Below are positions 33,875 through 53,416 of a stretch of DNA of 64,000 bases, one piece after another. Each line of letters starts with the position of its first letter. The first letter of the stretch is position 1. The translations under genes and the position numbers were made by a program. The stretch is from IMG/VR virus record IMGVR_UViG_3300010885_025649, positions 124,001 to 188,000 of that record; one strand, 5' to 3'. The notes beneath the pieces are model-generated. The model saw only the letters and a list, made by a program, of their open reading frames with translations, had not been told where the DNA came from and did no database searches.

Positions 33875-33958
33875 TTGCACTCCTTTAATAGTGGAGAACA
33901 AATAAATAGTCGATATATACAGAAAAGAAGTCGAGGGAAGGCCCCTCAACTTCATTAA

Positions 33959-35554: not shown

Positions 35555-35671
35555 GTGTCTCTCCAATAAGCCGCCTTTAAAAGAGGGCAGCTCAAATAAA
35601 GAGTCGATAATACTTATCCTAGAAAAGAAGTCGGAACTTCCTAGGGAAACTAGGATAAAGCTCCGACTTAG

Positions 35672-36310: not shown

Positions 36311-36473
36311 CTTGATGTCTCCAATAAGCCGCCTTTAAAAGAGGGCGAACTCAAATAAAGAGTCGATAATACTTATCCTAGAAAAACTGTCGAATGTAGT
36401 GCTAGTACATCCGACAGCTTGGTGGTCAGTTATTTAGATTGTCTATCCTCGCAGACCTACGAGGGTTAATTGG

Positions 36474-36917
36474 TTACGGGCTATCCGCGCATAAATCTTC
36501 AATGATGCTTAATACATCATCAAAGTCCTGTGCAGGAAATACAACCCCTAACGAAGTGATGACAGCCCAATTAAAGCCATCATGTTCGTAGAAGCCGTAC
36601 ACACCCAACTTAAATGTGCCGATAACGACATCTAAGCTAAGTGGTTCCACCACAGGAGGTGCCACAGAATAACCCATAAGTACCTGTCCCCAGATGCCCA
36701 GGTCCGTGGCATAACCCTGAATAGCAGGATTAAGCCCATCGCCATAGGCCCAGTGCAGATGCAGGTCTTCAATAACCTCATGAACGGTAATACGAGTACC
36801 ATCCTTGAAGGCCTTGAATCCCCACACCTCACCTTGTGGGTTATAGATTTGCTCAACAGTAATGTTAAGCTCCTCTACAACCCCAACTGGTGGCAGGAAG
36901 AAATGGAGTTTATCCAT
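36474..36917 (-). CDS. hypothetical acidic early protein
   Basis: MDKLHF start with AAGGAG. Confidence 0.7.
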   Translation of the reverse strand: MDKLHFFLPPVGVVEELNITVEQIYNPQGEVWGFKAFKDGTRITVHEVIEDLHLHWAYGDGLNPAIQGYATDLGIWGQVLMGYSVAPPVVEPLSLDVVIGTFKLGVYGFYEHDGFNWAVITSLGVVFPAQDFDDVLSIIEDLCADSP

Positions 36918-37197
36918 GTTCTCCTTTCTCCCGCGTGCAGATAACCAGCTAGTTATCCTACGTCTTATGGAGTTCAATCAACAAATAAAGAGTCGATAAT
37001 AATTAATCTAGAAAAGAAGTCGCTAACCCCTAGAGACTAGGATAAGTTAGCGACTTAACTTTTAGAAGCTAAAGTACGCGATGATCATCGCTATAATAGC
37101 GATGAACAAAGAACCTTCAGCAATCTTCTTCAACACAGAAATCACCTCCTTAGGTGTGTACCTAAAGAAGAGGTCGGGGTATTCCCCCGACCTACTA

Positions 37198-37746
37198 TTA
37201 ATCTTTACTAAACGTTAAGACACCTCCAGTATCAAGGTAGATACGAAGGATTTCCCAATCGCTTTTATACGATAGGTGTGGAAGGAGTTTTTGAAGATCT
37301 CCTTTCATACCCATACGTATAAGCAAATCTGGGGTTTGGAGCCACGAACTCCAGTTGAGTTGGTTTGTGCAGTGACTAAACCAATCATTATCTAAATTGC
37401 CCGTACGAGCAAGTTGACTGATTTGGGAATCAGTCAAGGTGTAAAACTTCTTATCCCGCGCTTTAAGCGGGACAATGAGTTTCCCGGGTAGAGCATTAGG
37501 CCCCACCTGTGCAGCAACTCTCTGCTGTACCCGGATCTCCCCTAAAGGAGTGCCCACGATTCCCCACCAAAGATGGAACAAATCATGAACAGAAGGTACT
37601 GCTGCCCCCTGTTCAATGTACCACTGACAAAGGGAACCCCCCCCTTGTAGTCTAAATAACTTTATGGGACATTGTTGCTCCGCGTCATCAACGCGGATAA
37701 ACAATAGCGAGCCCATCCGGTGACCACTCTTCTTAGATAATCCCAT
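37198..37746 (-). CDS. hypothetical early protein
   Basis: 182 aa with RBS. Confidence 0.7.
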   Translation of the reverse strand: MGLSKKSGHRMGSLLFIRVDDAEQQCPIKLFRLQGGGSLCQWYIEQGAAVPSVHDLFHLWWGIVGTPLGEIRVQQRVAAQVGPNALPGKLIVPLKARDKKFYTLTDSQISQLARTGNLDNDWFSHCTNQLNWSSWLQTPDLLIRMGMKGDLQKLLPHLSYKSDWEILRIYLDTGGVLTFSKD

Positions 37747-37836
37747 GATCCTCTCCCTGGAGTACCTCTACGAAATTGTAGAGCAGTAGTCCAAGAAAAA
37801 GAGTCGGAGGTTGCTAGCCTCCAACTCTTTATTTAC

Positions 37837-38241
37837 TTATTGCGGTGGGAATTCAAAGAACTCCACGATGGTAGTCAACGGGAGGTGCACCCATTTAGAG
37901 TAATGCACCTCCGTTAACATAACATTTGACGCATAGGGCAGGGTGCCCTCAGTCATGGAGAGTGTAATATGAGGGTGCGTGTTATCGCACACCTCCTGGA
38001 TCTCCTCAGGAAGGAGAACTGACAGGGCTTGCACCCTATCATCGTGGTGTGACAGCATAGCTGTCACAATAAGCTGCTGACCAAGCAGGTGTTGATAGCC
38101 GACGCTATCAACCCCGAACTTGAGCGTGCAATGGAAGTGTTTAGCTTCCACTGGAAACTCGAAGTTCACAGCAGCTTTGACTGCTGCGATGGCCTCAGCA
38201 GTCAAAGAAAGCCAAAGAATTCCCTTTGCCATGTCATTCAC
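37837..38241 (-). CDS. 2H phosphoesterase
   Basis: Two HxT motifs: HCTLKFG and PHITLS. Confidence 0.8.
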   Translation of the reverse strand: MNDMAKGILWLSLTAEAIAAVKAAVNFEFPVEAKHFHCTLKFGVDSVGYQHLLGQQLIVTAMLSHHDDRVQALSVLLPEEIQEVCDNTHPHITLSMTEGTLPYASNVMLTEVHYSKWVHLPLTTIVEFFEFPPQ

Positions 38242-38317
38242 CTGGGGTGTGAAAGATTTGCCCCAGAAAAGAAGTCGGTAATCCCTAGAGAAACTAGGAT
38301 AGATTACCGACAGCTAG

Positions 38318-38665
38318 CTACAGGTAGACCCTGCAGTTAGTCAGGAGTATAGGATACTCCTCTCTTAACCAATCTCGATCCTCCTCTAAAAGAGGGACAG
38401 GATCCTCATTATCAATACGATAATGAGTGGCACGATTGCACACCTCATCACCGTTCATTATATCTTCAACAATGTAACCATCTAAGGTTACAAACTCACT
38501 GTTAAACATGGAGCAAAGCTCCTGTGTAATATAGCTCTTACTCCTAAAAGGAGTAATGGGGCCTAAGTCCCCATTGTTAATTTGATCTCTCTCGACTGTA
38601 TCCCGGGTAACTTTACCCACAGCCAGTAAACAAAACTCATAGGCCTCAGCAGTAAACTTGATCAT
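38318..38665 (-). CDS. hypothetical early protein
   Basis: 115 aa with AAGGAGG RBS. Confidence 0.75.
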   Translation of the reverse strand: MIKFTAEAYEFCLLAVGKVTRDTVERDQINNGDLGPITPFRSKSYITQELCSMFNSEFVTLDGYIVEDIMNGDEVCNRATHYRIDNEDPVPLLEEDRDWLREEYPILLTNCRVYL

Positions 38666-38773
38666 GGTGAACCTCCTTGACAGAGAGGGGAACCACCCCG
38701 AGATCTTTAATAGAGGATCTCAGAAAAAGAGTCGAAGACTATAAGAGGAGGCTCTTACAATCTTCGACTCCAG

Positions 38774-39112
38774 TTAGGCATCATAAACAAGGGTATTACC
38801 CCCAGCTTTCTGAAAGCCTAAACTTAAGAAGGCCAAGCTCCGATGCTCAGCCAAGCCATCCCCCTCATAAGGAATGGCCATTACTTCAACCCCAGCCAAG
38901 GGGCCAGCGGTCCATTGGCTGAAGGTACGACAAAGCCATCGTACAATCCGGACTTTCGTCCTAACTTCAGCACTAACAATAGTATAACTATTATTAATGC
39001 TAAAGCTAATAGACCCCGAGCTTGCAGTCCCACGGAACTCAAGCTCAACGGCAACCCCATCAATTAGGGTTACCGCTTTGATAATGTCTAGTTCCATATT
39101 AGAAACTATCAC
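38774..39112 (-). CDS. early protein, GNAT-like C-terminus (paralogue of 39411-39803)
   Basis: AIPYEGDG...R..F.SLGF. Confidence 0.65.
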   Translation of the reverse strand: MIVSNMELDIIKAVTLIDGVAVELEFRGTASSGSISFSINNSYTIVSAEVRTKVRIVRWLCRTFSQWTAGPLAGVEVMAIPYEGDGLAEHRSLAFLSLGFQKAGGNTLVYDA

Positions 39113-39410
39113 AACAGAAAAAGAGTCGAGGCAGTTGCCCCGACATCTTAGTTAGAATTTCTTACCCGCGCTAACTACGCGGACACCCCTAAAGTCCAGC
39201 CCCAAGCTGGTCTAGGGTGATGAACCCTAGCCTCCAAGCTTGAAGCCAACAGTTGGAAGGGGTGCACTCCTCAACTGTTGTGAACATCTTCACTACCAAC
39301 TGGCGCTCAGCATCAGTCAGTAACAAAGCTAACTGTGGGCACATAAAGAATCACCTCCTTAAGGTTATGCTCACAGAAAAGAAGTCGAAGGGAAGGCCCT
39401 CCAACTTCTT

Positions 39411-39803
39411 TTAGGTGATAAGAAAATAACTATCACCATACTCGGCAAAGCCGAGTGAATCAAGAAATTTGCAGCGGACACTGTGATGGCCATCACCATC
39501 ACAGGGAAACGCGCAAACAATGGTGTTTGCGGGGAGACCCGCGATGTGTGCTTTTACAGCACGGTACGCGGTACGGACCGCGCTTGTTGGGACGACGCTG
39601 TGGTTAGCAGCATTGTAACCAACGGAGCCATTAACATCTGCATCGAGGACGATGCAGCTGACGTAATCATCACCGAAGAAGTCTTCGGTGACGAAGAAGT
39701 TGACGCTAAGCGCGCCAACGGTGATATCAGCATTGAAGCTGACATCAACAGGAGTATTAGATACTCCTGCTTTGAGATTAGTAAGTTGGCGAATGGTATT
39801 CAT
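39411..39803 (-). CDS. early protein, GNAT-like C-terminus
   Basis: AFPCDGDG...R.KFLDSLGF. Confidence 0.7.
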   Translation of the reverse strand: MNTIRQLTNLKAGVSNTPVDVSFNADITVGALSVNFFVTEDFFGDDYVSCIVLDADVNGSVGYNAANHSVVPTSAVRTAYRAVKAHIAGLPANTIVCAFPCDGDGHHSVRCKFLDSLGFAEYGDSYFLIT

Positions 39804-40130
39804 TCCCCCCCTCCTTCTGTTACCCAGATTAGGTAACTCAAATAAAAAGTCGGAGGATACAGAAAGAAAGTCGTTAACTCCTAGGGAAACTAGGATAAGT
39901 TAACGACTAGTCACTTAAGGGCAGCGATAAACGATGCAGATGGCTGCATCGAGAGTAGCCAAATACAGGGCTAATCCAACGTTGACAAGAATCGCGGCGA
40001 GGGCCGCGATTAAAATATCCAATGCGTATTTGCGCATGGTGTCTCCTTGTTACCCAGATTAGGTAACTCAAATAAAAAGTCGGTATATACAGAAAAGAAG
40101 TCGGTAACCAAGGGGTTACCGACTATGAGA

Positions 40131-40337
40131 TTAGAATCCAAGGGCGCTAAGGCCATCTTGGATTGTCTTGAGTCTAGTTGGGGTGGTACGATACCCCCCT
40201 GCTAGACAGACAAGATGAAAATATAAATCTGGGTTTTTTGTACAAAACGGATTTGCCGAGTATACGGTATCCACCGAAGGGGTGAACACGGAAACGGAAA
40301 CGGAAACAATCAAAACAAAACGGATTAACTTTGACAT
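40131..40337 (-). CDS. first early gene, possible signal peptide
   Basis: 68 aa, AAGGAG RBS, behind the outermost conserved box. Confidence 0.65.
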   Translation of the reverse strand: MSKLIRFVLIVSVSVSVFTPSVDTVYSANPFCTKNPDLYFHLVCLAGGYRTTPTRLKTIQDGLSALGF

Positions 40338-40560
40338 TTGAACTCCTTAATAGTGGAGGACAAATAAAGAGTCGAGGCACAGAGGCTCCCAGTGTCAAGG
40401 GTATGAGCTAAAAAATCTAGACGAAAACACATATATGCCGGGGGGGTATAGCAAGTACATATATGGCCTATTCAGAAAATTTCTAATTTTTTGGTGGGAA
40501 GTCGGAATTTCCCGATTCGAATCTGATATGGTTAGAAAGTATACACCGGAGAGTTGCCTT

Positions 40561-41328: not shown

Positions 41329-44300
41329 TCAAGTAGTCATTACAGACATATCATTCCCGGCCACATCTTGGAAGTGGTATTCATATTCCTGATTATTAAT
41401 AGAACTAAGATAAGAAGTCTGATTTAATTCAGAATCATCATATTCATCAATAGAATCAGTAATAGAGACCTCCGCGATATTAAGAACATCAGACTCTCCA
41501 GCAGAGTTAATAAGCTCAAGCCGATATCTTTCAGCTTGGGCTTGTTCATATTCATTCTCAATAGCTTGAGCAGTCAAGGAAGTAACAGGGGATTCTTCTC
41601 TAGTAGCTGTCCGGACAGCCATAGCCGCAGATAACCCCGCGGCAAGCGCACCAAACGCGGCAGTAATAAGTCCGGATCCCATATTAGCAAGACCACGAGA
41701 AGCAAGTTCTCCAACATTAGTACCTTCTTTCCCTATAAATTTAGCAATAGGTGTTGTAATAACATCAGATAGGATAGTACTACCAACAATATTTCCTGCA
41801 AGACCGAGGGCATAGCCCCCTAAGATTTCATGTCGGGTATCACTATCAGACATATCCCTCATAGATTTAACTGCAGAGGTAATATCCGAGGCCATCATAA
41901 AAGCGGATCTCATAGGAGCGAAAGTATTAGAAGACATAAGGCCATGACCAACAGATCTACCTAATTCAGCAGGATCAGTATTAGACTCTCTACCTAAAGC
42001 GCCACCAACAATAGAAGCACCGATAGTAGTAACTGCCAGCATACCATATCCAAGGAATCCCATAGGAGTATTATTAGACATAGCATTTTTAAAGTTTCTA
42101 ATAAGGCCACTAGGAGGATTAATATGTGCGCGCAGTTCATTAGATTGCGCTAATCTAGTAACCATTTCATTAGCTTCATAAGGATTCATTTGTTTAATAT
42201 TATTATGTAAAGCATTAGAGAGATCCACAAGATTTTGATTATGTTCATTAGAATCTGGTGCTGAAGTAGACTCATAAGCAGCTTGTGCAATAAACATCAT
42301 AGTTTCCTTAGCAGTTTGTCCAGAGATACCTAATCTAGAAGCATCACTAATAGCACGATCAATAATAAGTTTTCTACCTACAATTCGTTTAGCCGTTTCA
42401 TAATCAATTACTTTGCTTTGTGGTCCAGCACTAGTAGAATATTCATGAGTATAACTTGCAGTACTGGGGTCAGTACCAATCATACCCGTAGCTCTAATAT
42501 AAGAAACACCATTAACAATTTTACCAGAACCATTAACATAAATTTCCCCTGGGAAAGCTCTAGGACCATGGCTAGAATATTCAAGAATTTTATCAACAGC
42601 ATCACTAAAAGTCTTAGTCTTCATAGTCTCATCAATAGAGGCTCTAAAGCCAGACATAATTTCTTTAATATTTACATTATGTAATTTACCTCTACCAAGG
42701 ATATCAGTAATAGTAGTACCAGCACCTTCACGGCTAGCAAAGTTTACTGATTCCGTAATAAGGGCTTGACCAATATGTGCAGCGGCCAAAGCCAAATCAC
42801 CAATATCAGCTTTACTTTCAGTAGTTAAAGCTTTCTGAACCCCATACATCTTTTGAATATTAAGTAATCCTTTATGCATAAGTTCATTAACTTTATTACG
42901 GGCATCAGGAACAGAAAGGGGATCAAAGTCAATAGAACCCAATCCAGCTTCACCAAAAGGAGCAATAGTATTACTAGTATTAATACGACTAGCCATAAGT
43001 TCACGCTCATTTAAAGTAGAAGTAACAAACTTAAATAGATCATGATACTGGTGTGCTTGTAGAACTCTATTCATAGTATCTTGAAGATCCTTAGTATAAG
43101 TAACAGTACCAGTAGTATCAGTAGCAAAAGCTCTAAGAGCAGCAATATCAGAATTATTCATTGCCGATCTACCCAGACTATCTTCTGCAAGCGTAACCAA
43201 CCGGGTAATCTTCTCACTACTCCCTCCAGTAACTAATTCTTCATCTAAGGTTTGGAATAAGTTAGCCGCAATTCTACGAATAGTTTGCAGTTTAGTATGA
43301 GGAACTTCTTTAGCAAAGTCATGAGCAATTTCATCACTACTAAGAGATCCCACATGTGCTGCAAGAGCACCATAGCTTAAATTTGTAAGGATTTTATTAG
43401 AGATAGATTCTGTAAGTGGAGTACCGGCATTACCTTGGACAGCAGATATATAATCTGCAACAGGATTAAGAAGCCCAGTAGCTTGAACAGCTTGATCAAG
43501 AGCTGCAGGTTGCAACTTAGTTTTAGTAGGCTTGTCTTCATAAGCATTCTCATACAATTGATTTAATGCAGTATACATTTCGCTAGGAGATACTCCGGTA
43601 GCAGCATTAGGTTTAATACCTTCTCTTCCCAGCATTTGCATTTGATAAGCAATACGAGATACAGACTCAATCGTTCTAGCTTTAGCTTTACCCATACTAT
43701 CCGCTTGTAAAAACTCATGACTAAATATATGAGAAGTAGTATCATAAAGCATACCCATATACTTAGTAGCCACTTGAGCAGTTTGTTGAGTAGCAGCCGC
43801 GGCTATATTTTGAGGCATAATAACAGGGAACATTAGTTTAAGGTAACTATTAACAGTTCCTTCATTAGCAGAATACGCAGCCAAATGTTGGCTTAAGGTT
43901 GGATTACCTTGTATAGTATTAAGTTTATCTTCAACAGAAGCAGATTTAAAAGCTGCGGCGCCTGCCGCTCCAAGTTCTGTTGAGACAACAGTTTCAAACT
44001 CAGCACTATGAAAGTGATCAATAATTTTAGTAGTAGATTCATACTGTGCTCTACCAAACTTATTAAGAAGAATAGAGTCTTCAATTGTTTGGGCATTAAG
44101 TCCAGAAAGAACTCTTGATTGACGTTTGAAGGTAGCTAAGATATTAGTATCAGAGGTAACATTTGCTGTTACTTGTTCATGAAGACTAACAATACGTTTA
44201 TCCTCCATAATTCTTTCAGCAGTTTCTTCAGCAGATGTTGGGCCAAGTACACCATAAAGTGCATCATAAGTACTATGAACCGCATCAACTCCTGAAGTAC

Positions 44301-47300
44301 CATAAGGAATAACAGTAGTATTTACCGCTTGTCCAGCGCTACGTAATCTATTAGTAGAATCTGTTACAGCTTGACTAATATCTGTAGTAGTAGGTGTTCT
44401 ACCCAGGCGTCTACCAATAATAGCATCACGTTCAGCCATTGCTTGTGCGCTACTAGTAAGAGCTTGAATGGTAGCCATATCCCCGTCATAATCCCCTTGC
44501 TGGTAGCCCATAGCAAACTTAGACACGAATATACTATCAGAATTATTCGCGAATCCTAGCTGCACTCCGCGTCTTCCAGCAGCACGATTATTAAGAGTTC
44601 TCAGAGTAATAACCTTCAAAGCGGCGGGGGCAACACCCTGAGGTGCTCCTGCTCTTAGGAACATACTAAAGAATCTATCACTATATGCATCCACCTTAAG
44701 CATACTAAAAGTGTCATTAATAACACCTAATAGATTACGATCATAGCCTTGTTTAGTAGTAGGATCTAAGATACCATAAGATTCCGCATGATGACGAAGA
44801 CTATAGCCATTAAGTTTAATATCATCTAATATAGAACTGCCAGCAGTAGAACCAACCAAAGTACTCTTTAGAGTAGTTTCATCTAAAGTAAAGGGATTTG
44901 TAACAAAAAACTTAGGGTTAGTATAAGTATGAGCTTTAGTTAAAATATCAAACCCACTATCTAAGATTTCTTGATCTGCTCCCCCAGAGTAATAAGATTT
45001 ATTAGATTTAGCTTTAGTAACATAATCATTCACCACACGTAATGCAGGATTAAGTCCCAGAGCAATTTCTCCCAACTTAACCTGATTAGATTCCATAGTA
45101 ACACCAGAACCCCCGGCCGCTCTATGAATAGTGGTAGATAAGTATTGTTGATAAGTATCAGAATCAAGTAGGTTAGAAAGCGCTGTAATATAATTCCTCT
45201 TAGCCTCATTAAGAGATTTCAGGTAAGAATACTCTTCAATAGATAACCCGTAGTTAATAAGCTTTTTACCATTAGCATTACTAACATTCTGACTCATATA
45301 TTGAATCTTAGACATATTAGTATCAGGATCTATTTCCTTTAAGGAAGTCGGCATTTGGTTAAAGACTTTAGTAATCTCTTGTTGACTTAGAACAAGTCTA
45401 TTAATATATTGATCTGCATTATCTCTATTAGGATTTACATTAATAGATAATTGTTTAAGTTGTTCTGCTCCCAGTACAGGAATAAGTTCAAAGTCTAAGA
45501 TAGTAGATTCAATATTTCTATGTACTCTAACTGCATTAGGAATAGCGGCCCCTAATTCAAATGTAGGAATCAGGACAGTACCCTTCTGCCTTGCGGCAAG
45601 TACTTCCTGTCTATATTTATACATATCAGTTTCATTAATTCCACCTGCTGTTCTATCTGCCGCAGAGGTATTAACTAAGGTTTGTATTTTAGTATTTAAA
45701 TCTATTTTATTAGTACTAGATAATACATAACCAACAGCAGATTCTTTAGCTGATCTATACATAGAATCATACAAACTATGAATAGCCATAGCTTGATTTC
45801 TTGTCTCTTCATTTACGACCAAGTGAGTAAGATCTAATCCACCATGCCATTGAGTATCAAAGGCAGGAGCAAATTCAGTTAAGCCTTGACTAAAAGCGCC
45901 GACAAGGAACATTCTCCCAATAGCTTGTTGAGTTAATTGTCTTAAGAGACCTATCTGTGATTGTTCACCGACAAGATCAGCAAAGGGAGTATTAGCAGTA
46001 AAGCCAAGGTGATCTGAATCATTAGCATAGTGTTCATATAAAGAAGCGTACTGACTAAACATATTAGCAGAAGTCTTGCGGCCAAATCTGGTATCATCTG
46101 CTCTAAAGGTATCTTGAGATAAAGTAATCAGATTAAAGTTAGGAATAATCTGTTGTAATCTTTGTAGAGCTGTATTATCTTTTGGTTTAGCCCCGAGCAT
46201 TTGTCCTAATACAGAAGAGACTAAACCATCTAGTTCCTCATTAGCTGGGATTCTACTAGCTCTAACTTGTGTTTTAACCTGAGTATATAAAGAAACAGCT
46301 TCAATCAAGTAATAAGTAAAGTCTAATTTATGAGCTTGTGCTTGTTTTGCAGGAAGGATAAATCCAAACTTCTGACTTTGAGGACTCATTACTTCTGTAT
46401 AAGCCTCTTTAAACAACTGATTAATATATTGTGCAGGATCAGCATGTTGTATAAACTGATATAATTCATTATAGAAACCATGAGGAGACCCCGCAGTATA
46501 ATAACTTTGCATAGCTGCCTTGACTTCAGGAGGTGTTTTATTATAGAAATCAATTTGCTCCTTAGACATTTTATTAACTAAACTTTCAGTAAGCTTTTTA
46601 ACATCCTCAATAACTTCTTGAGTAAGTGTCTGCAAATGTTTAGTAGAACTATGTGTTTGAAGATTTCTTAATTCCATAATCTTCATGAAATCATCTTCAT
46701 TAGTAGCCATTAACGCGCCATATCTAAGTTTAAGGGCACCAGACATTTTAGGTTGTGTCCCATACTTAAACTGTTTAGGAGATACAAGTCTATTAATAAG
46801 AGGGCTAGCTGTTGCCAAAGATCCCTTAAGTTTTGTTCTAAAGTCAGCACCATCATTAACAAAGAGTTTATCTTCATCAAAGACATCATTATTCATCAAG
46901 ACATCTTGAACAGCATTACTAAGTCTAAGGAATCTTCTAGCCCCAATACCTCCATAAATACCATCTAAGGCATTTGCTTGCGTTTCGGCATAAGTTCTAT
47001 TCATACCTGCGGTAGGACCTTTAGTATCAAGCAATCTAGCAGTAGGATTAGTATAAAGTTTAGCTTTAAAAGTGACAGCAGTATTACCAGATTGTTCTGG
47101 ATCCACATTAATCATAACAAACTGCATTTTAGCGCCGGTTCTATTTTCAGCTAAGTTAGGAACTTCAACAGTAAAACCTGCCCCCATACCAACAGATTTC
47201 TGTAGATTAGTAACAGCAACTTTAAATTCATCTTCAGTATAAAAGTTACCCGCAGTAACTAAATCTCTTAGTTTAGTAACTAAGTTATTATGTGTGTTTT

Positions 47301-50300
47301 GATCTGCGGTTGTTTTATAGGGTTGGAATCTGATAGTAAGATCTACTAACCGCACTTGTGTAGTATCTAAAAGATCATAACCTATTTCAGGATTAAGTCC
47401 GGCCTCACCAGTCGTAAGTGCAACCACTTGCAGTGGTTCCCGAGGTCTTTCTATAGCAGCAAGCTGAGCTAATCTTAAAGCATCACTAGCTTCACCATAA
47501 CCCATATGATAAACGGGTTCAGGCAAACCTGTTTCTCTAAACTGATTAGTAGCAGGATTAAACTGCCCATATTGATAAGAGAATCTAGGCGAAGCCAAGT
47601 TCTTAGTTCTTTGTCCTAATTGCCCAATAGATTTATGTGCTGTAAGAACGGCAACCATAGGAATTCTAAAAGGAGTTCCCGCGGCAGTATTACCGGTAAC
47701 ATCATCAAGTTTGTCATAAGCCTGCATTCTAAAAGCAGCTTCCATAGTAAGAATAGAAGCAGCAGGATCTCCAATCTGAGTAATAGCTCCAAGCTTCTTA
47801 GCTTTATATCCTTTAGTTAATTGGCTTTGCATAGACAGAGAATACATAGTCTCTGAAGTACCATCAAGGTTATAAACAACTCCTTCAACTCCTGGAGAAT
47901 CCGGACTAACTGGAGCCACTTTAATAACTTGTTCATTAGTAGTAAATAGATCATCATACATAAAAGGTTGATACTTATTACTATCCCCAAGTTGAGAATA
48001 CCCCATAGTTTTAGTAGGGATAGGAACAGAAGCTTTAGTAAGCATTTTAAAGATAATACGCATCTCTTCGGTATTAAATCTACTCAGATCTTCGTTAGTT
48101 CCGGTAGATTTAATAATTCTATATTTCATCAAGCGCATTTTATCAACAGTATCAGTAAGAGTAAGATCAGGATTATCCAATGCTCTATCATAAGCGCGTA
48201 ATCTTTGTACCAATTGATATTCCGCGATCTGTCCTAAAGCAATAATAGCTTGAGCGGAATTAAGTTTAACAGTTTGATTAGCCCCAAAAGTTCTACCAGC
48301 AATAACACGTTCTTTATCTCCGGTATTAATAAGCATACTTGAGATTAAGGTGTCATATTTCTGCATATAGATATCACCTTTTTCAGTGAACCCAATATCA
48401 TAGTTAAATACATCTTCCCCTGCATATTTAAGTCTAATTCTAAGACCTGATTGCGGTATTCCTGGTAAATGTTCTTGCATAAAGAGTTTAGAATTTAATC
48501 CACCCTTTTGATTAAATTCCATAGTTTGTCTAATAAGCTCACTAGCTTTATTCCAAGAAGCTTTAGTACCAAATGCTTGTCTAGCCGCATTATTAAACTC
48601 CGCAGTACTACTATAAATAGGACTACGACCACTAAGGGTATCTTCTCTAAAGAGTCCAAGTTCTTGTAGTCCTGATTTAAGTTGCCCTAATAATTGTGGA
48701 TCATGTGAGTCTTTATTACCAATAAACAAACCAGTCTCAGTATTACTGCGCAAAGCTCTAGCACTAATATTAGCCGAGGTCATCAATCCATATTGGGCAT
48801 CACCATACTGATTAGTAACCAACATACTAGTTTGGTGTTGAAATCTTTGTGTAGACGAAAATCTAATCTTCCCGGCGGCAACAAGTCTATCAAATTCCCC
48901 GGGGTTAGTAGTATCAAAATATCGTCTAGCTTGTTCTAATCTAACATCCCCCCCAAGTTCTAATGGAGATCCCAGCATTAAAGTAAATCTATCTGTATTT
49001 AAAGCCTTAAGTATCTTAGTACTTATACCCGAAATAGTATTAGAAGATAGATCTAACTGATTAGTTAGTAAGTATCCTCTAGAAGTGCCCTCATCTAAGA
49101 CAGTTTGTAATAATTTATCCAGAGCAAGTTCATTAAGGTTACTACCCGTAGTACCAATAGGCCCTCTAGTATCTATAAGAGCAGTAGTTTGATATTTAGT
49201 AACTGCATCTATAGCATCAGTAACCAATAATTGTTGATACTGGGTACCAAGGCTAGCTCCAGTAAACACAGATTCCACCCCAGCGCTATATTGTCTAATC
49301 TGTTTACCAACCAAAGTACTATCATTAAGCAGATTAGAGCCATGTAAACCAACAAACATTTGGTTAAACTGTGATGGATTAGTATAAGGTTCAGACATTC
49401 TACCAGTAGCACTAGGAGTTAAGTTCTGTTTACCCAACCCAGCAAATGCTATAAGTTGCCCATCCCCATACACAGATATATTCTTTTGGTGTTCAATTCC
49501 GCCACTAGAACCACTACTAAGATCTTCATGGAAAACCCCAGAGGCACGAATCATATCATCAATAGCATTTACATTTCCACTAGTAAACGCATCCAGATAA
49601 GTTCTACCCCCAACAATAGATCTTAAAGCATCACTATTAAGAACAATAGAGCCACCCCTACCTTGTTGTAAGAATGCTAGATTAATATCTAGTTTACCCC
49701 CATATTCAGCATCAGCCAATTGTAATAAGTTCTTAGCCATAGCAAAGACTTCCAAGTTACCTGAGGTAATACTACTAGAAGGTGCTTGCACAGTTAAGTT
49801 AATAGTTAATTTATTAAGGCTATTCTTAACAGTACTTCTAGGATTAAGTAGATAATCTGTAGCTGCGATCAGCATTTGATTAATCTGCCCTTCTTGTTGG
49901 AAGAAGGAGCTAAAGATAGTCGCTTCACTAAAAGCAACAGGACCAATACCCGCAGCAGCAAACACATTAGCAAAGCTAGCTAAAGTAGGAGCACTAAGAA
50001 TACCAGTAGGAGTTTCAGTAACATTTAGTAGAGATCTAAACCCCAAAGGATCCTCATTAAACTTAATACCTTTACGAACACTAGCAATACCCACAGTATC
50101 AAGCAAGAAGTGATTAGCCATAACAACCTGCATAGCACTAGAAGCAATGGCACTCATATTCAAATAGAAGTCATCATTAGCAAGCCTATCTGAGTCAAGA
50201 GTATTAATAGCAACTCCAGACTTAGTATAGAAATTTCTAAGTTCAGAGCTATAACTTTCTACAGGTTTAAAGAATGGTTGTAATGCACGTTTAAGTCTTC

Positions 50301-50895
50301 TATTAGGTTCTTGAGTAGGGTCAAAGTAATTAAATGCATTAGTGCCGGCCTCCATAAACAAGCTCAAACCTTCTCCTAAAGTTTGTCTATAAGATTGAAC
50401 TTCAGCAGTTTCTTGGAATTGATAAGCATCCGCAGCTTCAATATTAGCTTCCAAATCTAAGAATGCCGTTTCAGAGGCGGAGCTACCAGCTCTATCAACA
50501 TGATATTGTCTAGCAGCTTGACTAATAGCAGTAGCTAAATCCTTATTACTACTCATTGCAGTAAGTCTGAACTTTCTAATAGTACTACCATCAGGAGCTA
50601 ATTCGCTTTGCACAACTAAGCGATTATCTACAAAGTAATTATCTTGCCCAAATGGAGACGCACCTCTACGATAATAATAGGGGTTACTATCCCCGGACAT
50701 ATCAGTACCAGGAGACTGGAACATCTTATCTCTAAAGACGCGTCTATTAGCATTTCTAGTATCATAGACCCCAGCAATACCTTTATCAATAAGCGCAGCA
50801 ACATTATCATCAGAGGTAATGGCATAACCGCCCTGATAATACTGTCCTGTTATTTTATTCAAGAAACTATTATTGCGCATATAGTTAACTAACAA
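41329..50895 (-). CDS. giant (3188 aa) putative virion two-barrel RNA polymerase with N-terminal PLD-like domains (RNAP-A)
   Basis: FLRAGAP...QQGDYDGDMA (44479-44493); RLLDTKG; PLD-like HQKNISVYGD...GKQNLT and HQTS...TSANISARALRSNTETG; Gly/Ala hydrophobic C-terminus. Confidence 0.75.
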   Translation of the reverse strand: MLVNYMRNNSFLNKITGQYYQGGYAITSDDNVAALIDKGIAGVYDTRNANRRVFRDKMFQSPGTDMSGDSNPYYYRRGASPFGQDNYFVDNRLVVQSELAPDGSTIRKFRLTAMSSNKDLATAISQAARQYHVDRAGSSASETAFLDLEANIEAADAYQFQETAEVQSYRQTLGEGLSLFMEAGTNAFNYFDPTQEPNRRLKRALQPFFKPVESYSSELRNFYTKSGVAINTLDSDRLANDDFYLNMSAIASSAMQVVMANHFLLDTVGIASVRKGIKFNEDPLGFRSLLNVTETPTGILSAPTLASFANVFAAAGIGPVAFSEATIFSSFFQQEGQINQMLIAATDYLLNPRSTVKNSLNKLTINLTVQAPSSSITSGNLEVFAMAKNLLQLADAEYGGKLDINLAFLQQGRGGSIVLNSDALRSIVGGRTYLDAFTSGNVNAIDDMIRASGVFHEDLSSGSSGGIEHQKNISVYGDGQLIAFAGLGKQNLTPSATGRMSEPYTNPSQFNQMFVGLHGSNLLNDSTLVGKQIRQYSAGVESVFTGASLGTQYQQLLVTDAIDAVTKYQTTALIDTRGPIGTTGSNLNELALDKLLQTVLDEGTSRGYLLTNQLDLSSNTISGISTKILKALNTDRFTLMLGSPLELGGDVRLEQARRYFDTTNPGEFDRLVAAGKIRFSSTQRFQHQTSMLVTNQYGDAQYGLMTSANISARALRSNTETGLFIGNKDSHDPQLLGQLKSGLQELGLFREDTLSGRSPIYSSTAEFNNAARQAFGTKASWNKASELIRQTMEFNQKGGLNSKLFMQEHLPGIPQSGLRIRLKYAGEDVFNYDIGFTEKGDIYMQKYDTLISSMLINTGDKERVIAGRTFGANQTVKLNSAQAIIALGQIAEYQLVQRLRAYDRALDNPDLTLTDTVDKMRLMKYRIIKSTGTNEDLSRFNTEEMRIIFKMLTKASVPIPTKTMGYSQLGDSNKYQPFMYDDLFTTNEQVIKVAPVSPDSPGVEGVVYNLDGTSETMYSLSMQSQLTKGYKAKKLGAITQIGDPAASILTMEAAFRMQAYDKLDDVTGNTAAGTPFRIPMVAVLTAHKSIGQLGQRTKNLASPRFSYQYGQFNPATNQFRETGLPEPVYHMGYGEASDALRLAQLAAIERPREPLQVVALTTGEAGLNPEIGYDLLDTTQVRLVDLTIRFQPYKTTADQNTHNNLVTKLRDLVTAGNFYTEDEFKVAVTNLQKSVGMGAGFTVEVPNLAENRTGAKMQFVMINVDPEQSGNTAVTFKAKLYTNPTARLLDTKGPTAGMNRTYAETQANALDGIYGGIGARRFLRLSNAVQDVLMNNDVFDEDKLFVNDGADFRTKLKGSLATASPLINRLVSPKQFKYGTQPKMSGALKLRYGALMATNEDDFMKIMELRNLQTHSSTKHLQTLTQEVIEDVKKLTESLVNKMSKEQIDFYNKTPPEVKAAMQSYYTAGSPHGFYNELYQFIQHADPAQYINQLFKEAYTEVMSPQSQKFGFILPAKQAQAHKLDFTYYLIEAVSLYTQVKTQVRASRIPANEELDGLVSSVLGQMLGAKPKDNTALQRLQQIIPNFNLITLSQDTFRADDTRFGRKTSANMFSQYASLYEHYANDSDHLGFTANTPFADLVGEQSQIGLLRQLTQQAIGRMFLVGAFSQGLTEFAPAFDTQWHGGLDLTHLVVNEETRNQAMAIHSLYDSMYRSAKESAVGYVLSSTNKIDLNTKIQTLVNTSAADRTAGGINETDMYKYRQEVLAARQKGTVLIPTFELGAAIPNAVRVHRNIESTILDFELIPVLGAEQLKQLSINVNPNRDNADQYINRLVLSQQEITKVFNQMPTSLKEIDPDTNMSKIQYMSQNVSNANGKKLINYGLSIEEYSYLKSLNEAKRNYITALSNLLDSDTYQQYLSTTIHRAAGGSGVTMESNQVKLGEIALGLNPALRVVNDYVTKAKSNKSYYSGGADQEILDSGFDILTKAHTYTNPKFFVTNPFTLDETTLKSTLVGSTAGSSILDDIKLNGYSLRHHAESYGILDPTTKQGYDRNLLGVINDTFSMLKVDAYSDRFFSMFLRAGAPQGVAPAALKVITLRTLNNRAAGRRGVQLGFANNSDSIFVSKFAMGYQQGDYDGDMATIQALTSSAQAMAERDAIIGRRLGRTPTTTDISQAVTDSTNRLRSAGQAVNTTVIPYGTSGVDAVHSTYDALYGVLGPTSAEETAERIMEDKRIVSLHEQVTANVTSDTNILATFKRQSRVLSGLNAQTIEDSILLNKFGRAQYESTTKIIDHFHSAEFETVVSTELGAAGAAAFKSASVEDKLNTIQGNPTLSQHLAAYSANEGTVNSYLKLMFPVIMPQNIAAAATQQTAQVATKYMGMLYDTTSHIFSHEFLQADSMGKAKARTIESVSRIAYQMQMLGREGIKPNAATGVSPSEMYTALNQLYENAYEDKPTKTKLQPAALDQAVQATGLLNPVADYISAVQGNAGTPLTESISNKILTNLSYGALAAHVGSLSSDEIAHDFAKEVPHTKLQTIRRIAANLFQTLDEELVTGGSSEKITRLVTLAEDSLGRSAMNNSDIAALRAFATDTTGTVTYTKDLQDTMNRVLQAHQYHDLFKFVTSTLNERELMASRINTSNTIAPFGEAGLGSIDFDPLSVPDARNKVNELMHKGLLNIQKMYGVQKALTTESKADIGDLALAAAHIGQALITESVNFASREGAGTTITDILGRGKLHNVNIKEIMSGFRASIDETMKTKTFSDAVDKILEYSSHGPRAFPGEIYVNGSGKIVNGVSYIRATGMIGTDPSTASYTHEYSTSAGPQSKVIDYETAKRIVGRKLIIDRAISDASRLGISGQTAKETMMFIAQAAYESTSAPDSNEHNQNLVDLSNALHNNIKQMNPYEANEMVTRLAQSNELRAHINPPSGLIRNFKNAMSNNTPMGFLGYGMLAVTTIGASIVGGALGRESNTDPAELGRSVGHGLMSSNTFAPMRSAFMMASDITSAVKSMRDMSDSDTRHEILGGYALGLAGNIVGSTILSDVITTPIAKFIGKEGTNVGELASRGLANMGSGLITAAFGALAAGLSAAMAVRTATREESPVTSLTAQAIENEYEQAQAERYRLELINSAGESDVLNIAEVSITDSIDEYDDSELNQTSYLSSINNQEYEYHFQDVAGNDMSVMTT

Positions 50896-50996: not shown

Positions 50997-51416
50997 ATGA
51001 GAAAGGATAAGTTTTACAAGATCACGCTACCAACCGGGTTAGTAATTGAATTCAGAGAACCATTATTCAAAGAAGTAGAAACATTAAAGCATCAGTGGAA
51101 GAGCAAATTAGCAGCTAAGCAAATTGTATTAACCGATTTAGTTCCGGCCGCATGCATTGAAACTATTAATGGACAAGCTCCAGAAGAGCCAGATCCTATT
51201 GCATTACTAAGCACAATGGTATACAGAGATGTATGTGCTTACACTAACTTCTTCAATGGAATGTGTATGCCTCCTGACTTGGCCAAACAGATTGAGGAAG
51301 CAGATTACAATAGTTTTTTCGAGACGGGGGAGATCAACTTCCAGACCAAGAACAACTTCGAGACTTCCGATGGCAAAGAGACCGTAGTCGTCAAGAAAAC
51401 CGCCCAGAAACCTTAA
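50997..51416 (+). CDS. tail assembly chaperone (G)
   Basis: Size and 'ITLPTG..IEFREP' pattern; slippery site near the 3' end. Confidence 0.65.
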   Translation: MRKDKFYKITLPTGLVIEFREPLFKEVETLKHQWKSKLAAKQIVLTDLVPAACIETINGQAPEEPDPIALLSTMVYRDVCAYTNFFNGMCMPPDLAKQIEEADYNSFFETGEINFQTKNNFETSDGKETVVVKKTAQKP

Positions 51417-51913
51417 GTAAATATCGGCATAATCGTATAACCACTTGGGAAAAGAGAGTATTTCCTACACCTGTACAGTTTGCTCATCTTTCCCCAATTG
51501 GCCCAATATTCCCGGAAGTAACTATATTAGATGGAATCTTCTACTTTGTATATAGTCACTTCTTATATAGACGAACTACAAAGTTTCGAGATAACAAGTA
51601 CGATTTAACCAGGGCAATACAAGAAAGATTAATTGATGACTATATAAATAGTTATGAGTTGCGAGATCTATATGAAATAAGTAAAGGTTGGGGAATGCCT
51701 GCTTTTGCTGAGCCATTAACTGAGTTATCATATTTCTTAGTAGCCGCATTAAACTCAATACATTTAGAATATGTAGCAAAACTAAATAGACAGAAACAGG
51801 AAGAAGAACAAAAAATATTTAAGAAGTTTGAAGAAGTTAATAAACCTGCACCTCAAGGTCCACCAAGAGTTGAGAGTGCATTAACCAAAGTACATGTACG
51901 AGGATTAAGTTAA
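51314..51913 (+). CDS. -1 frame extension of the tail chaperone (GT)
   Basis: The -1 frame is open from 51314 (just after TAG 51311-13) to 51913, starting exactly at T TTT TTC. Confidence 0.75.
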   Translation, partial: FFRDGGDQLPDQEQLRDFRWQRDRSRQENRPETLSKYRHNRITTWEKRVFPTPVQFAHLSPIGPIFPEVTILDGIFYFVYSHFLYRRTTKFRDNKYDLTRAIQERLIDDYINSYELRDLYEISKGWGMPAFAEPLTELSYFLVAALNSIHLEYVAKLNRQKQEEEQKIFKKFEEVNKPAPQGPPRVESALTKVHVRGLS

Positions 51914-53416
51914 ATGGCACAAAGAGGAAGGCCTAAAGGCAGTACCGTTAGAAATAATAACTCATCAGAGTTTGATTTTAGCGCAATGAATAAGCCAGTC
52001 TCTGGGGCAAAACAAGTAGGTACAAATCTAAATCCATTTAATGCAAGTCTAGTCCAAAGTTATTATAGATTACCTACGAATGCGATTCAGAGTTATATAT
52101 ACGCAGCAACAGTAGAACCTACTATTCACGGAGCATTAGAATTAATCATCCGTAGTTTAGTAGGTGCTATTGGTAGTTATGAACACCCCAATAAAGAAAT
52201 ACAAGATTTTGTTAGACAGAACTTATTAGAATTAGATGAAAGTTTAAGTAATATCTTTTATAACTTAACCTATAATAATTTAACTGCGGGATATGCAGTA
52301 GGTGAGAATATTTGGGCTTTAAAGAATGAGCAATGGTGGTTAAAGAATGTAGCTTGTTATCACCCTGCATCAATATTCTTCAGTGTTAACCACAGAGGAA
52401 TTCTAACAGAAGGTGAAGCCAGTTTATTCGGCCCCTATACTACTGGAGTTTGGCAGCATCAATTCATGGGTACACCAATGAGACTACCCAGAAATAAACT
52501 AATAATCACCGCTCACAAGAAAAGAGATAATAATTATTATGGGGAGTCAGCTATCAAACCCATATATAATCATTACTTAGCTAAAGGTCAAGTACTGCCC
52601 ATGCAGTTAGTAGCATTAGATAGATATGGTAGTCCATTAATCCATGCTAATGTACCTGCAATGCCTACAACCAGAATGTTAGAAGATCCAATTACTAAAG
52701 AGATTCGTCCTATGAGTATGGCAGAAGATCTAACAGAGAAAGTTAGCAATCTACAAACCGGTAGTACTATTGTTACAGAGCAGCCGCCAGGAGCTAACAT
52801 TCAACCAATCAAGATTGAAGCTATTACAACCAGTAATAACTTTGGTAAGTCTTTTGATAATGCTACCCAACAATACAATAGAGAAATCTATAGAGGCTTA
52901 TTAGTTCCGCAGTTATTATTAGAAACCCAAACCGGAGTAATCGGACAAGGCGGGGCACCAATACACTTTGAAGTATTCAAGATTATGTTACAGAGTTTAT
53001 ATGAAGAAGTAATGGGGCCATTTCTAAGAGAGACTATTGGATCATTAGTATGGTATAACTTTAATGAGCGTAATCCGGGTAGCTTTCCTTTTATGCACAA
53101 AGATATTGCTACACAAGAACGCATTGCAGCATTACTAAAACAAGCTGTAGTGGATGGATTCCTAGACTACAATAATATTCAAGATCTAGATTATGGCAGA
53201 AGACTATTAGGATTACCACAATCTAATACGGATGAATTAGCCTCACATGCTAAACAGGTAAGAGATAGAACTAGTAGCAAGCCTGAAGAAATTAAAACAG
53301 CAGGACAAGTCTTGAAGCAAGGATTAGCTGCACAAGACTTTACACCAGAACAGATACAAGCAATCTATCATTGGTTAGAAGAAGCATTAGATTTAAATAA
53401 GGAAGAAGAAGAATGA
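51914..53416 (+). CDS. portal protein (Mu gp29/DUF935-like)
   Basis: GYAVGENIW, NYYGES, LDRYGSP motifs; 500 aa at the start of the head module. Confidence 0.85.
   Translation: MAQRGRPKGSTVRNNNSSEFDFSAMNKPVSGAKQVGTNLNPFNASLVQSYYRLPTNAIQSYIYAATVEPTIHGALELIIRSLVGAIGSYEHPNKEIQDFVRQNLLELDESLSNIFYNLTYNNLTAGYAVGENIWALKNEQWWLKNVACYHPASIFFSVNHRGILTEGEASLFGPYTTGVWQHQFMGTPMRLPRNKLIITAHKKRDNNYYGESAIKPIYNHYLAKGQVLPMQLVALDRYGSPLIHANVPAMPTTRMLEDPITKEIRPMSMAEDLTEKVSNLQTGSTIVTEQPPGANIQPIKIEAITTSNNFGKSFDNATQQYNREIYRGLLVPQLLLETQTGVIGQGGAPIHFEVFKIMLQSLYEEVMGPFLRETIGSLVWYNFNERNPGSFPFMHKDIATQERIAALLKQAVVDGFLDYNNIQDLDYGRRLLGLPQSNTDELASHAKQVRDRTSSKPEEIKTAGQVLKQGLAAQDFTPEQIQAIYHWLEEALDLNKEEEE

Follow-up and report, generated by a model that had tools for sequence, protein, structure and literature searches.

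A giant protein of an uncultured freshwater phage combines a PLD-like module with an RNA polymerase-like motif

What a protein of more than 3,000 residues does beside the portal gene of an uncultured freshwater phage is the question raised by a 64,000-nucleotide stretch of IMG/VR record IMGVR_UViG_3300010885_025649 (hereafter, the window). A sequence-only reading had proposed that this gene encodes a polyvalent virion protein of 3,188 aa with PLD-like domains, an RNA polymerase (RNAP) core and a membrane-like tail, located head-to-head with a frameshifting tail chaperone that is not followed by a tape measure. It also inferred an ejected or tape-fused virion RNAP carrying a nuclease/phospholipase-fold module, by comparison with Thermus phage P23-45 gp96. 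We find that the features it described are real and conserved, while its interpretation is only partly supported.

Results

A real open reading frame with conserved motifs

The frame 41329-50895 on the minus strand is open for 3,188 codons from a TTG (nt 50895), with the stop codon at 41329-41331. However, an ATG lies at codon 6 (nt 50880), and the public gene call, found on contigs of 212,497 and 155,514 bp, is 3,183 aa; the probable gene thus spans 41329..50880 (-). An alternative genetic code was rejected, as treating any one stop codon as sense does not merge the ORFs meaningfully.

In the 3,188-aa numbering, HQKNISVYGD starts at aa 469 (nt ~49491) and GKQNLT at aa 488, followed by HQTSML at aa 687 (nt ~48837) and SANISA at aa 707. 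DYDGD is at aa 2135 (nt ~44493), i.e. 0.67 of the length, and hydrophobic Gly/Ala-rich segments are found at about aa 2945-2968, 3024-3054, and 3068-3097. DYDGD is expected about 1.5e-3 times in a protein of this size and composition. The residue numbers of the HKD and DYDGD motifs below count from the ATG.

Direct homology searches with the giant protein returned very little. PHROGs, a phmmer search of PDB, and tblastn against cultured phages found nothing, and Pfam gave only 3 subthreshold hits (CENPH, PLDc_2, and WXG100_2). Word-indexed searches recovered only the queries themselves, and pattern scans of IMG/VR and JGI metagenomes found only copies of the same phage. An exhaustive HMMER search with aa 1495-2694 identified a single relative (P0002; 26-30% identity), in which all of the features above are conserved.

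Synteny reveals a family shared with Ma-LMM01

By contrast, gene order reveals many more relatives, which form an unannotated family. The arrangement giant gene, frameshift pair, and Mu-like portal recurs in locus L001, Microcystis phage Ma-LMM01 (gp080-gp083), Microcoleus phage My-WqHQDG, and about 30 IMG/VR loci. The linkage to the portal and head module is strict across roughly 40 loci fetched by their portal gene (portal 21-45% identical), even where the giant gene itself is inverted.

A cultured counterpart, Ma-LMM01 gp080/MaMV-DH01 ORF102 (3,562 aa), is annotated as a hypothetical protein. It has the same position and orientation next to the gp081/gp082 frameshift pair and the portal gp083, and carries 2 HKD motifs, GDFDGD with an upstream R..P.G element, downstream motifs, C-terminal hydrophobic helices, and an acidic tail. 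Similarity to the window protein is only at the profile level (hhalign is colinear with P = 0.0012, while BLAST and phmmer find nothing), and gp080 differs in having both HKD lysines. In the published transcriptome of Ma-LMM01, gp080 falls in expression class B5 together with the portal, i.e. it is expressed with head genes (PMC5780444, supplementary file 4).

The adjacent gene carries a conserved frameshift signature

The neighboring gene, 50997..51416 (+), is divergent from the giant gene and encodes a 139-aa zero-frame product (family phrog_32670) with a homologue on the P0002 contig. An in-phase slippery heptamer, T_TTT_TTC, is located at 51314-51320, and the -1 frame (51314..51913), which opens at a TAG just before it, runs to the portal ATG at 51914. 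The predicted fusion product is about 306 aa. The same arrangement, with other canonical in-phase heptamers (A_AAA_AAG, G_GGA_AAG, A_AAA_AAA, and G_GGA_AAA), is found in L001, in Ma-LMM01, and in about 30 IMG/VR loci. No significant RNA structure is detected downstream of the slippery site here (z = 0.99).

The gene is followed by the Mu-like portal (51914..53416 (+); Pfam Portal_Mu, E = 5e-25), which is the first gene of the head module (major capsid protein at 58517-59674), and not by a tape measure. The label "tail chaperone" has no homology support: only phrog_32670, a family of unknown function, matches, in 17 of 18 members, and no chaperone family was found in Pfam, PHROGs, or PDB. The pair does resemble the lambda gpG/gpGT type in having a short product of about 120-140 aa, plus a longer one of about 300 aa made by a -1 slip on a canonical X_XXY_YYZ heptamer, beside the longest structural gene of the genome. 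However, it lies between the giant gene and the portal, and in most loci is divergent from the giant gene, rather than between the tube and tape-measure genes.

The N-terminal region carries a PLD-like module

The PLD-like module spans about aa 330-730 (48691..49893 (-)). The first HKD motif is H464-x-K466 ... G-K-Q-N486-L-T (nt 49417-49491), and H464, K466, N486, and T488 are invariant in the family alignment. The second (nt 48730-48837) is degenerate, as the sequence-only reading had stated: H682-Q-T ... T-S-A-N704 ... N-x-E-x-G retains H682, S702, N704, and E715, but the lysine is Thr here and Val in P0002, whereas the other relatives have H-x-K. The module is therefore a degenerate member of the two-HKD enzymes, and may be inactive in this phage.

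This protein alone scores below the Pfam PLDc_2 threshold (15 bits against a cut-off of 27; E = 0.022). At the family level, however, most giants with enough sequence fetched share 2 HKD motifs, and PLDc_2 hits 5 of 16 relatives at E up to 0.01 (best E = 6.6e-13). The best PDB matches of the family profile are all two-HKD PLD proteins, namely the PLD3/PLD4 5'-3' exonucleases and, as top match, an entry deposited as "virion nicking-joining enzyme." Both half-sites align with these tandem H-x-K ... G-S/T-x-N proteins, although the E-values are marginal (0.006-0.5) and here the module is embedded in a 3,183-aa protein. An AlphaFold2 model of aa 160-1000, built from an alignment of only 2-3 rows, has a mean pLDDT of 36.7, rising to 50-70 only for aa 589-674. 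A Foldseek search with this model was not significant, with PPK1 and phosphatidylserine synthase, which both have PLD-type folds, appearing at E = 0.3-1.3.

An RNA polymerase-like motif in the central region

The central segment (44446..44673 (-)) contains R2076-A-G-A-P-Q-G, then about 50 aa, then Q-G-D2130-Y-D-G-D2134-M. QGDYDGDM (aa 2128-2135) is identical in P0002, and G-D-b-D-G-D (b = F, Y, or W) is present in all 13 aligned family members with R-x-x-x-P-x-G about 50 aa upstream. This matches the metal-binding D-x-D-x-D motif (typically in a b-D-G-D context) of the beta'-like double-psi beta-barrel (DPBB-A) of two-barrel, cellular-type RNAPs, and the residue context matches beta' and P23-45 gp96. 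In these enzymes an R-x-P strand lies about 30-45 aa upstream (N-R-A-P-T-L-H in beta'); the R-A-G-A-P-Q-G element is conserved family-wide, but its spacing and sequence differ from those of gp96, and from those of beta' and the 2 smaller ORFs described below (spacing about 30-35 aa in beta' and in these ORFs). A reading of GDFDGD as an FG-GAP or calcium-loop repeat was rejected, because the motif is single-copy and the following residue is never the Gly that those repeats require.

Support for an RNAP core rests on motif and context only. Alignment of the family profile by hhalign against DPBB-A segments of rpoC, gp96, and the window's 1,171-aa and 935-aa ORFs gives a probability of 42% (P = 2.7e-4; reversed control P = 0.016), while comparison with gp96 alone is not significant (probability 3%). 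All 14 protein-language-model neighbors with a family name for aa 1495-2694 are RdRP (PF05183). Profile searches of PDB with the polymerase region gave nothing relevant, and no polymerase family appeared in Pfam searches of 13 core regions. AlphaFold2 on aa 1560-2700, again from a 2-3-row alignment, gave a mean pLDDT of 34.5 with mostly helices. Domain-wise modeling, proposed beforehand as a check of the sequence-only reading, thus provided no fold evidence for either module.

No second, beta-like barrel was detected. Conserved blocks upstream of the motif (46711..47628 (-)) include Q-R-x-K-N (aa 1090-1094), G-G-x-x-x-R-R (about aa 1310-1316), and S-P-x-Q-F-K ... Y-G-A-L-M (aa 1367-1391), and an NP.NLKS block is also conserved. 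These have no match in PDB, and hhalign of the upstream blocks against rpoB and gp96 aa 300-700 gave P of 0.12 or worse. Downstream of the motif (43609..43761 (-)), Y-M-G-M-L-Y-D-T-T (aa 2374-2382) and L-G-R-E-G-I-K-P (aa 2417-2424) are colinear with G-K-x-Y-N and R-D-x-I-K-P-K in Ma-LMM01-type giants.

A conserved membrane-like C-terminus

The C-terminal region contains 3 Gly/Ala-rich hydrophobic helices (aa 2940-3092; 41605..42063 (-)), followed by an acidic tail (41332..41604 (-)); the last 120 residues, which include the final helix, have a net charge of -16. All 4 giants read to their end have hydrophobic helices and an acidic tail, and both were found in every relative checked, including P0002, the Microcoleus phage giant, gp080, and shorter relatives in loci L015 (2,139 aa) and L017 (1,195 aa). 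The latter two lack both enzyme motifs.

Further polymerase-like genes and a repeated motif

The window holds 2 more DFDGD ORFs, both with textbook beta'-like contexts and both candidate nonvirion RNAPs. A 935-aa ORF (27357..30164 (-)) has H-R-A-P-A-L-F, 31 intervening residues, then D-F-D-G-D, and a 1,171-aa ORF (13343..16858 (-)) has W-R-Y-P-L-I-F, 30 intervening residues, then A-D-F-D-G-D-Q. The named language-model neighbors of the latter are almost all RNAP families (RNA_pol_Rpb1_2 and related, LEF-9). No homologue of either ORF exists in cultured relatives.

Between the 935-aa ORF, which is at its downstream end, and the giant gene lies a block of small minus-strand genes (30307..40374 (-)) that contains 18 matches to a 13-nt CGACTCTTTATTT-type motif, 17 of them on the minus strand, against 3 expected; none of 100 shuffles reached 18. 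Hairpin plus T-run elements are found with them, making these candidate phage-specific promoters and terminators. By contrast, transcriptomics of Ma-LMM01 reported sigma-70-like promoters for all gene classes and no phage-specific motif (PMC5780444).

Discussion

Our preferred explanation, which we consider about as likely as not, is that the gene encodes a modular structural protein that is made with the head genes, carried in the virion, and delivered into the host with the DNA. The analysis itself shows that the N-terminal tandem-HKD module belongs to the PLD superfamily, its closest solved relatives being PLD proteins mostly annotated as nucleases, as well as the motif content, family conservation, synteny, frameshift signature, and coexpression of the Ma-LMM01 counterpart with portal and head genes. 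The remaining steps, including packaging, ejection, and any RNA synthesis, are inferred. In this view, the hydrophobic helices and acidic tail, found even in shorter relatives, would be the ancestral part and act in membrane insertion or anchoring during ejection. The DYDGD segment would be the beta'-like barrel of a very divergent single-chain two-barrel RNAP that transcribes the first phage genes, probably the adjacent block marked by the CGACTCTTTATTT motif, which ends in a second, smaller polymerase-like gene. The frameshifting gene would supply a short and a long form of a chaperone for this protein, as gpG/gpGT do for tape measures.

A possible but less likely alternative is that the protein is the tail tape measure or ejection protein of this myovirus, decorated with a PLD enzyme and served by the frameshift pair as chaperone, with DbDGD being a metal-binding or structural element that no longer makes RNA, or never did. 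Indeed, the frameshift pair is conserved, the named language-model neighbors of aa 2141-2700 are mostly tape-measure families (TMP_2/3/4), albeit with low scores (0.67-0.71), the C-terminal segments are of the kind described for many tape measures (PMC10770324), and shorter relatives without enzyme motifs keep the C-terminal module. No canonical chaperone/tape-measure pair follows the sheath and tube genes, where only tube-like paralogues, a TnpB gene, and a 1,176-aa nonhelical protein are present; the roughly 15 kb searched beyond the window, which is not the whole 212-kb genome, yielded only a 216-aa protein with faint tape-measure signals. Tails of Ma-LMM01-type phages, reportedly from 209 nm and up to 260 nm (PMC9927357), would need about 1,400-1,700 residues at ~1.5 Å per residue, more than the 623-aa gp093. 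However, the gene lies next to the portal, about 13 kb from the sheath and tube genes, rather than between the tube and baseplate genes, it is divergently transcribed from the frameshift pair, and the small protein matches no chaperone family. Conservation of the full GDbDGD motif with its upstream R..P.G in every aligned member is also hard to explain for a mere ruler. The 2 readings overlap, because a tape-fused polymerase has a precedent in gp96; "ejected or tape-fused" is plausible, but remains an inference.

It is unlikely that the protein is a nonvirion enzyme, e.g. a large replication or transcription factory protein or a host-takeover nuclease, made late and anchored to the host membrane by its C-terminus. 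The PLD module is nuclease-like, there is no proteomic evidence of packaging, and a membrane anchor combined with enzymatic domains would suit an intracellular membrane-bound complex, but the strict linkage to the portal and head module, the expression of gp080 with head genes rather than with early or replication genes, and the analogy with packaged giants (N4 gp50, crAss-like gp66, and P23-45 gp96) argue against it. It is very unlikely that the motifs are chance or compositional features of a fast-evolving structural filler, even though overall conservation is very low, AlphaFold gave no confident domain, and the protein is rich in Ala, Thr, Ser, Gly, and Gln. Loss of the motifs in most relatives would have supported this view, and the opposite is seen: the HKD residues and GDbDGD are invariant or nearly so across proteins that share only 14-20% identity, and some relatives give significant PLDc_2 hits.

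Among known systems, P23-45 gp96 is, as the sequence-only reading correctly stated, a tape-measure-fused virion RNAP, and was recognized by its DFDGD motif alone and then shown to be active (PMC10770324). Both are giant structural proteins with a single DbDGD motif, an upstream R-x-P element, no other detectable similarity to polymerases, and hydrophobic or transmembrane segments; both genomes encode a second, smaller two-barrel polymerase or candidate, and both have relatives whose long protein lacks the polymerase part. In gp96, however, the polymerase is N-terminal (DFDGD at aa 779 of 5,002, against aa 2130 of 3,183 here), the gene sits in the canonical tape-measure position of a siphovirus rather than next to the portal of a sheath-encoding (myovirus-type) phage, and a metallopeptidase is present instead of a PLD module. 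The single-chain two-barrel polymerases of crAss-like phage phi14:2 (gp66) and eukaryotes (QDE-1/RDR) are also comparable: gp66 is a large virion-packaged protein recognized by its aspartate-triad motif, DYDGD is the form found in QDE-1/RDR enzymes, and the language-model neighbors are RdRP. Yet we found no HMM or profile match in PDB, where these chains are expected, the crAss-like proteins carry DFDxD rather than DbDGD (bioRxiv 10.1101/2020.03.07.982082), and neither a PLD module nor C-terminal hydrophobic helices are known to have been described for gp66. Coliphage N4 gp50 (~3,500 aa) is likewise a three-part protein, with N-terminal, polymerase, and C-terminal domains, the last with a packaging role; it is injected and transcribes early genes, including a second phage polymerase, and here too there are extra polymerase-like genes and a specific motif in the small-gene block. 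But N4 is a podovirus and its enzyme is a T7-like single-subunit polymerase, whereas no T7-type signature or match in Pfam or PHROGs is present here.

A bolder reading, which is tentative at best, is that Ma-LMM01-type cyanophages and their uncultured freshwater relatives inject a giant fusion protein with a nuclease-type PLD head, a very divergent two-barrel RNAP core, and a membrane-inserting tail, which also serves as the tape measure and has its own frameshift-made chaperone encoded beside the portal. In the lineage of this window, it would head a cascade of 3 phage polymerases reading a CGACTCTTTATTT-type promoter. This would overturn the published view that the group has no RNAP and relies wholly on host sigma-70 transcription.

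Giant virion proteins that carry a polymerase into the cell are known from N4, crAss-like phages, and P23-45, and each was found by a lone catalytic motif. The present family would be a fourth, independent one, found in myovirus-type phages, including those that infect bloom-forming cyanobacteria, and combined with a PLD nuclease-type module and a membrane module, a combination not known to us in any virion polymerase. It touches a concrete published claim, namely that Ma-LMM01 and MaMV-DH01 lack any RNAP and use host promoters throughout (PMC5780444; PMC9927357), and exposes a conserved programmed frameshift outside the classical tail-gene context. It also suggests that enzyme modules are added to and lost from a common ejection-protein scaffold.

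Confirmation of the giant open reading frame and its motifs

The minus-strand ORF at 41329..50895 is open for 3,188 codons from a TTG, and an ATG at codon 6 (nt 50880) is the start used by the public gene call, resulting in a protein of 3,183 aa. No stop-codon reassignment is involved, and the window is part of an IMG/VR contig of 212,497 bp. The observation made in the sequence-only reading holds, as we find every motif it listed at the position it gave. Specifically, H-Q-K ... G-K-Q-N-L-T lies near nt 49490, H-Q-T ... S-A-N-I-S ... N-x-E-x-G at nt 48730-48840, and DYDGD at nt 44493, which is 0.67 of the length. The last 250 residues hold 3 Gly/Ala-rich hydrophobic segments, which are followed by an acidic tail (net charge -16 over the last 120 residues).

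Identification of relatives through synteny

Direct searches with the giant protein almost fail. PHROGs, the PDB, and cultured phages return nothing, and Pfam returns only subthreshold hits, among them PLDc_2 at E 0.022. An exhaustive HMMER scan of 1.84 billion representatives with aa 1495-2694 finds a single protein (hereafter P0002) of 3,279 aa, which is 26-30% identical along its whole length. P0002 keeps both PLD half-sites, QGDYDGDM, the downstream YMGMLYDTT and LGRE.IKP motifs, and the C-terminal helices, and its contig is syntenic with the window.

By contrast, synteny opened the family. The portal next to the giant gene is 27-28% identical to those of Microcystis phage Ma-LMM01 and Microcoleus phage My-WqHQDG, and both of these phages have a giant unannotated ORF beside 2 small ORFs and the portal. 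In Ma-LMM01, this giant is gp080, with 3,562 aa. A portal-guided scan of IMG/VR returned 43 loci, most of which carry a giant ORF of at least 2,800 aa, cut off by the 10-kb flank, immediately upstream of the portal. In 18 loci beyond the 2 copies of this phage, the fetched part contains D-[FYW]-D-G-D. The orientation of the giant gene varies among relatives—i.e. in My-WqHQDG (L006) and in loci L033 and L048, it is inverted relative to the frameshift pair and portal, such that it is co-directional with its 3' end adjacent, but it stays in the same place.

Conserved architecture of the family

Alignments of the family show a series of parts in a fixed order. Two HKD motifs near the N-terminus are followed by conserved middle blocks (QR.KN, GG...RR, and NP.NLKS..HGA), to which no meaning is attached, and by a conserved Gly/Pro block. 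Next is R-x-x-x-P-x-G, then about 50 residues, then G-D-b-D-G-D (b = F, Y, or W), with G-[KM]-x-[YF]-[ND] about 245 residues later, followed by [RG]-[DR]-x-x-K-P-[KN] and, finally, by 2 or 3 hydrophobic helices and an acidic tail. The window protein has all of these parts. A profile comparison of the pair formed by the window protein and P0002 with the pair from Ma-LMM01 and My-WqHQDG is colinear from R-x-x-x-P-x-G through [RG]-[DR]-x-x-K-P-[KN], with P 0.0012.

Two relatives with closer portals have shorter proteins (2,139 aa in locus L015 and 1,195 aa in locus L017). These lack both enzyme motifs but keep the hydrophobic helices and acidic tail, and as such the enzyme modules look like additions to a common scaffold. 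This parallels the P23-45 relatives whose tape measure lacks the polymerase (PMC10770324).

The PLD module

Pfam PLDc_2 matches 5 of 16 relatives (best E 6.6e-13), and in the family profile the residues H, K, N, and T of site 1 and H, S, and N of site 2 are invariant. The 8 best PDB matches of this profile are all two-HKD PLD proteins—i.e. an entry deposited as "virion nicking-joining enzyme" (E 0.006) and the PLD4 and PLD3 exonucleases. We therefore read the module as nuclease-type rather than as a lipase, although the statistics are marginal. In the window protein and in P0002, the second lysine is Thr or Val, and full catalytic competence is thus doubtful in this lineage.

Evidence bearing on a putative polymerase core

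The motif and its flanks resemble those of beta' (N-R-A-P-T-L-H ... N-A-D-F-D-G-D-Q) and of P23-45 gp96 (R-N-P-V-M-G-H ... V-D-F-D-G-D-T). Comparison of the family segment with hhalign against an alignment of rpoC, gp96, and the 2 smaller window ORFs described below gives a probability of 42% and P 2.7e-4, while the reversed control gives 0.016. A protein-language-model atlas places aa 1495-2694 next to unnamed viral clusters, and all 14 hits with a family name are RdRP PF05183. Other results speak against this reading. Both AlphaFold2 models are unusable (pLDDT 34.5 and 36.7), no HMM reaches any polymerase in our searches, no beta-like barrel was found, and the segment after the motif looks tape-measure-like to the atlas. 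It is noteworthy that the authors of the P23-45 study met the same lack of similarity and proved activity at the bench (PMC10770324), and the absence of HMM signal is therefore not decisive.

The genomic context raises the prior for this reading. The window holds 2 more ORFs with a textbook DPBB-A context (the beta'-like double-psi beta-barrel), one of 1,171 aa at 13343-16858 (-), with W-R-Y-P-L-I-F ... S-A-A-D-F-D-G-D-Q, and one of 935 aa at 27357-30164 (-), with H-R-A-P-A-L-F ... Q-G-D-F-D-G-D-C. Three such motifs in 64 kb are far beyond chance. Neither of these ORFs has a Pfam or PHROGs match, and neither has a homologous counterpart in cultured phages, where the 935-aa ORF gives only a marginal tblastn match (E 7e-3) to a neck-protein gene. 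The named atlas neighbors of the 1,171-aa ORF are almost all RNA polymerase families, mainly RNA_pol_Rpb1_2 and LEF-9, and this ORF also shares A-A-K-x-G-x-K-E-G ... R-x-P with gp96. Based on sequence alone, both are probably non-virion two-barrel RNA polymerases.

A block of small minus-strand genes (30307-40374) lies between the giant gene and the 935-aa ORF, and contains 18 matches to a CGACTCTTTATTT-type motif, 17 of them on the minus strand, against 3 expected. The motif sits just downstream of a conserved hairpin followed by a T-rich run and upstream of the ribosome-binding sites of small genes, and these are candidate phage-specific promoter and terminator pairs. This is the layout expected for an injected polymerase that reads early promoters and switches on a second polymerase, although the motif is not linked to any one of the putative enzymes on present evidence. 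The G+C content is 0.42-0.50 across the block of minus-strand genes at 12-40 kb (window 12000-40000), and 0.31-0.39 elsewhere, including the giant gene and the head module. Between the 3' end of the giant gene and the motif-rich block, at 40435-41304 (+), we also find a 289-aa protein with a LOV-type PAS domain, which has the G-K-N-C-R-F-L-Q-G signature (Pfam PAS_9, E 5.6e-22), a coiled-coil-like stretch, and a C-terminal hydrophobic helix with a weak holin-family match. This could be a light-sensing membrane protein of a probable cyanophage.

In Ma-LMM01, gp080 is transcribed in the same class (B5) as the portal and alongside head genes, not early (PMC5780444, supplementary file 4), which fits a packaged protein. 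The head module of the window also includes, at 54830-56272 (+), a protein with an N-terminal InPase domain (Pfam PF18823, E 6e-22) and DUF6321, which matches minor head protein families and the N-terminal parts of giant DarB-like proteins.

The neighboring frameshift gene and the tail module

The 139-aa ORF at 50997-51416 contains T_TTT_TTC at 51314 in the right phase, and the -1 frame opens at a TAG just before it and closes at the portal ATG. Related loci show the same arrangement. For example, locus L001 has G_GGA_AAA at the same place, Ma-LMM01 has A_AAA_AAG, and about 30 of the 32 IMG/VR loci examined have an in-phase canonical heptamer. By contrast, the usual in-phase heptamer was not found in My-WqHQDG and L048, although the -1 frame is open. 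A programmed -1 frameshift is thus well supported, even though no strong RNA structure follows the site in the window. The identity of this gene as a tail chaperone, as proposed in the sequence-only reading, is not well supported. The family is phrog_32670, of unknown function, and matches no chaperone family in Pfam or the PDB.

We also looked for a separate tape measure in the tail module beyond the window. This module runs from a 1,190-aa sheath through 3 tube-like proteins, a TnpB insertion, and a 1,176-aa non-helical protein to further small proteins, one with a faint spike-like signal. The 3 consecutive tube-like proteins (223, 130, and 290 aa; 9217-11266 of L009, the stretch covering this region) all match the same tube-like family, phrog_34837, at their N-termini, which looks like a tube paralogue array after the sheath. 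The TnpB/IS605 OrfB gene (L009:11366-12592, about 5.6 kb beyond the window's right end) is inserted between the tube-like genes and the next group of genes, which are probably baseplate genes. No chaperone/tape-measure pair is present in this module, and it therefore remains possible, judging from this part of the genome only, that the giant protein doubles as the ruler.

Interpretation of the giant protein family

The interpretation proposed from sequence alone, an ejected or tape-fused virion RNA polymerase carrying a nuclease/phospholipase-fold module, is partly supported. Our analyses show directly the motifs, their conservation, the synteny, and the frameshift signature, while polymerase activity, packaging in the virion, ejection, and a role as the tail ruler are inferred. 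The PLD assignment is sound for the family and degenerate for this member. The polymerase assignment is a well-motivated hypothesis that we hold with about even confidence, being strengthened by the genome's own polymerase-like genes and motif system and weakened by the lack of any fold evidence. The literature on the cultured relatives states that they encode no RNA polymerase, and we found no paper describing this family.

Overall, the features are real and conserved, and define an unannotated family that reaches cultured cyanophages. Giant virion or ejection proteins carrying a polymerase are already known, and in this reading the family would differ from them in its combination of modules and in its genomic setting, both of which are new.
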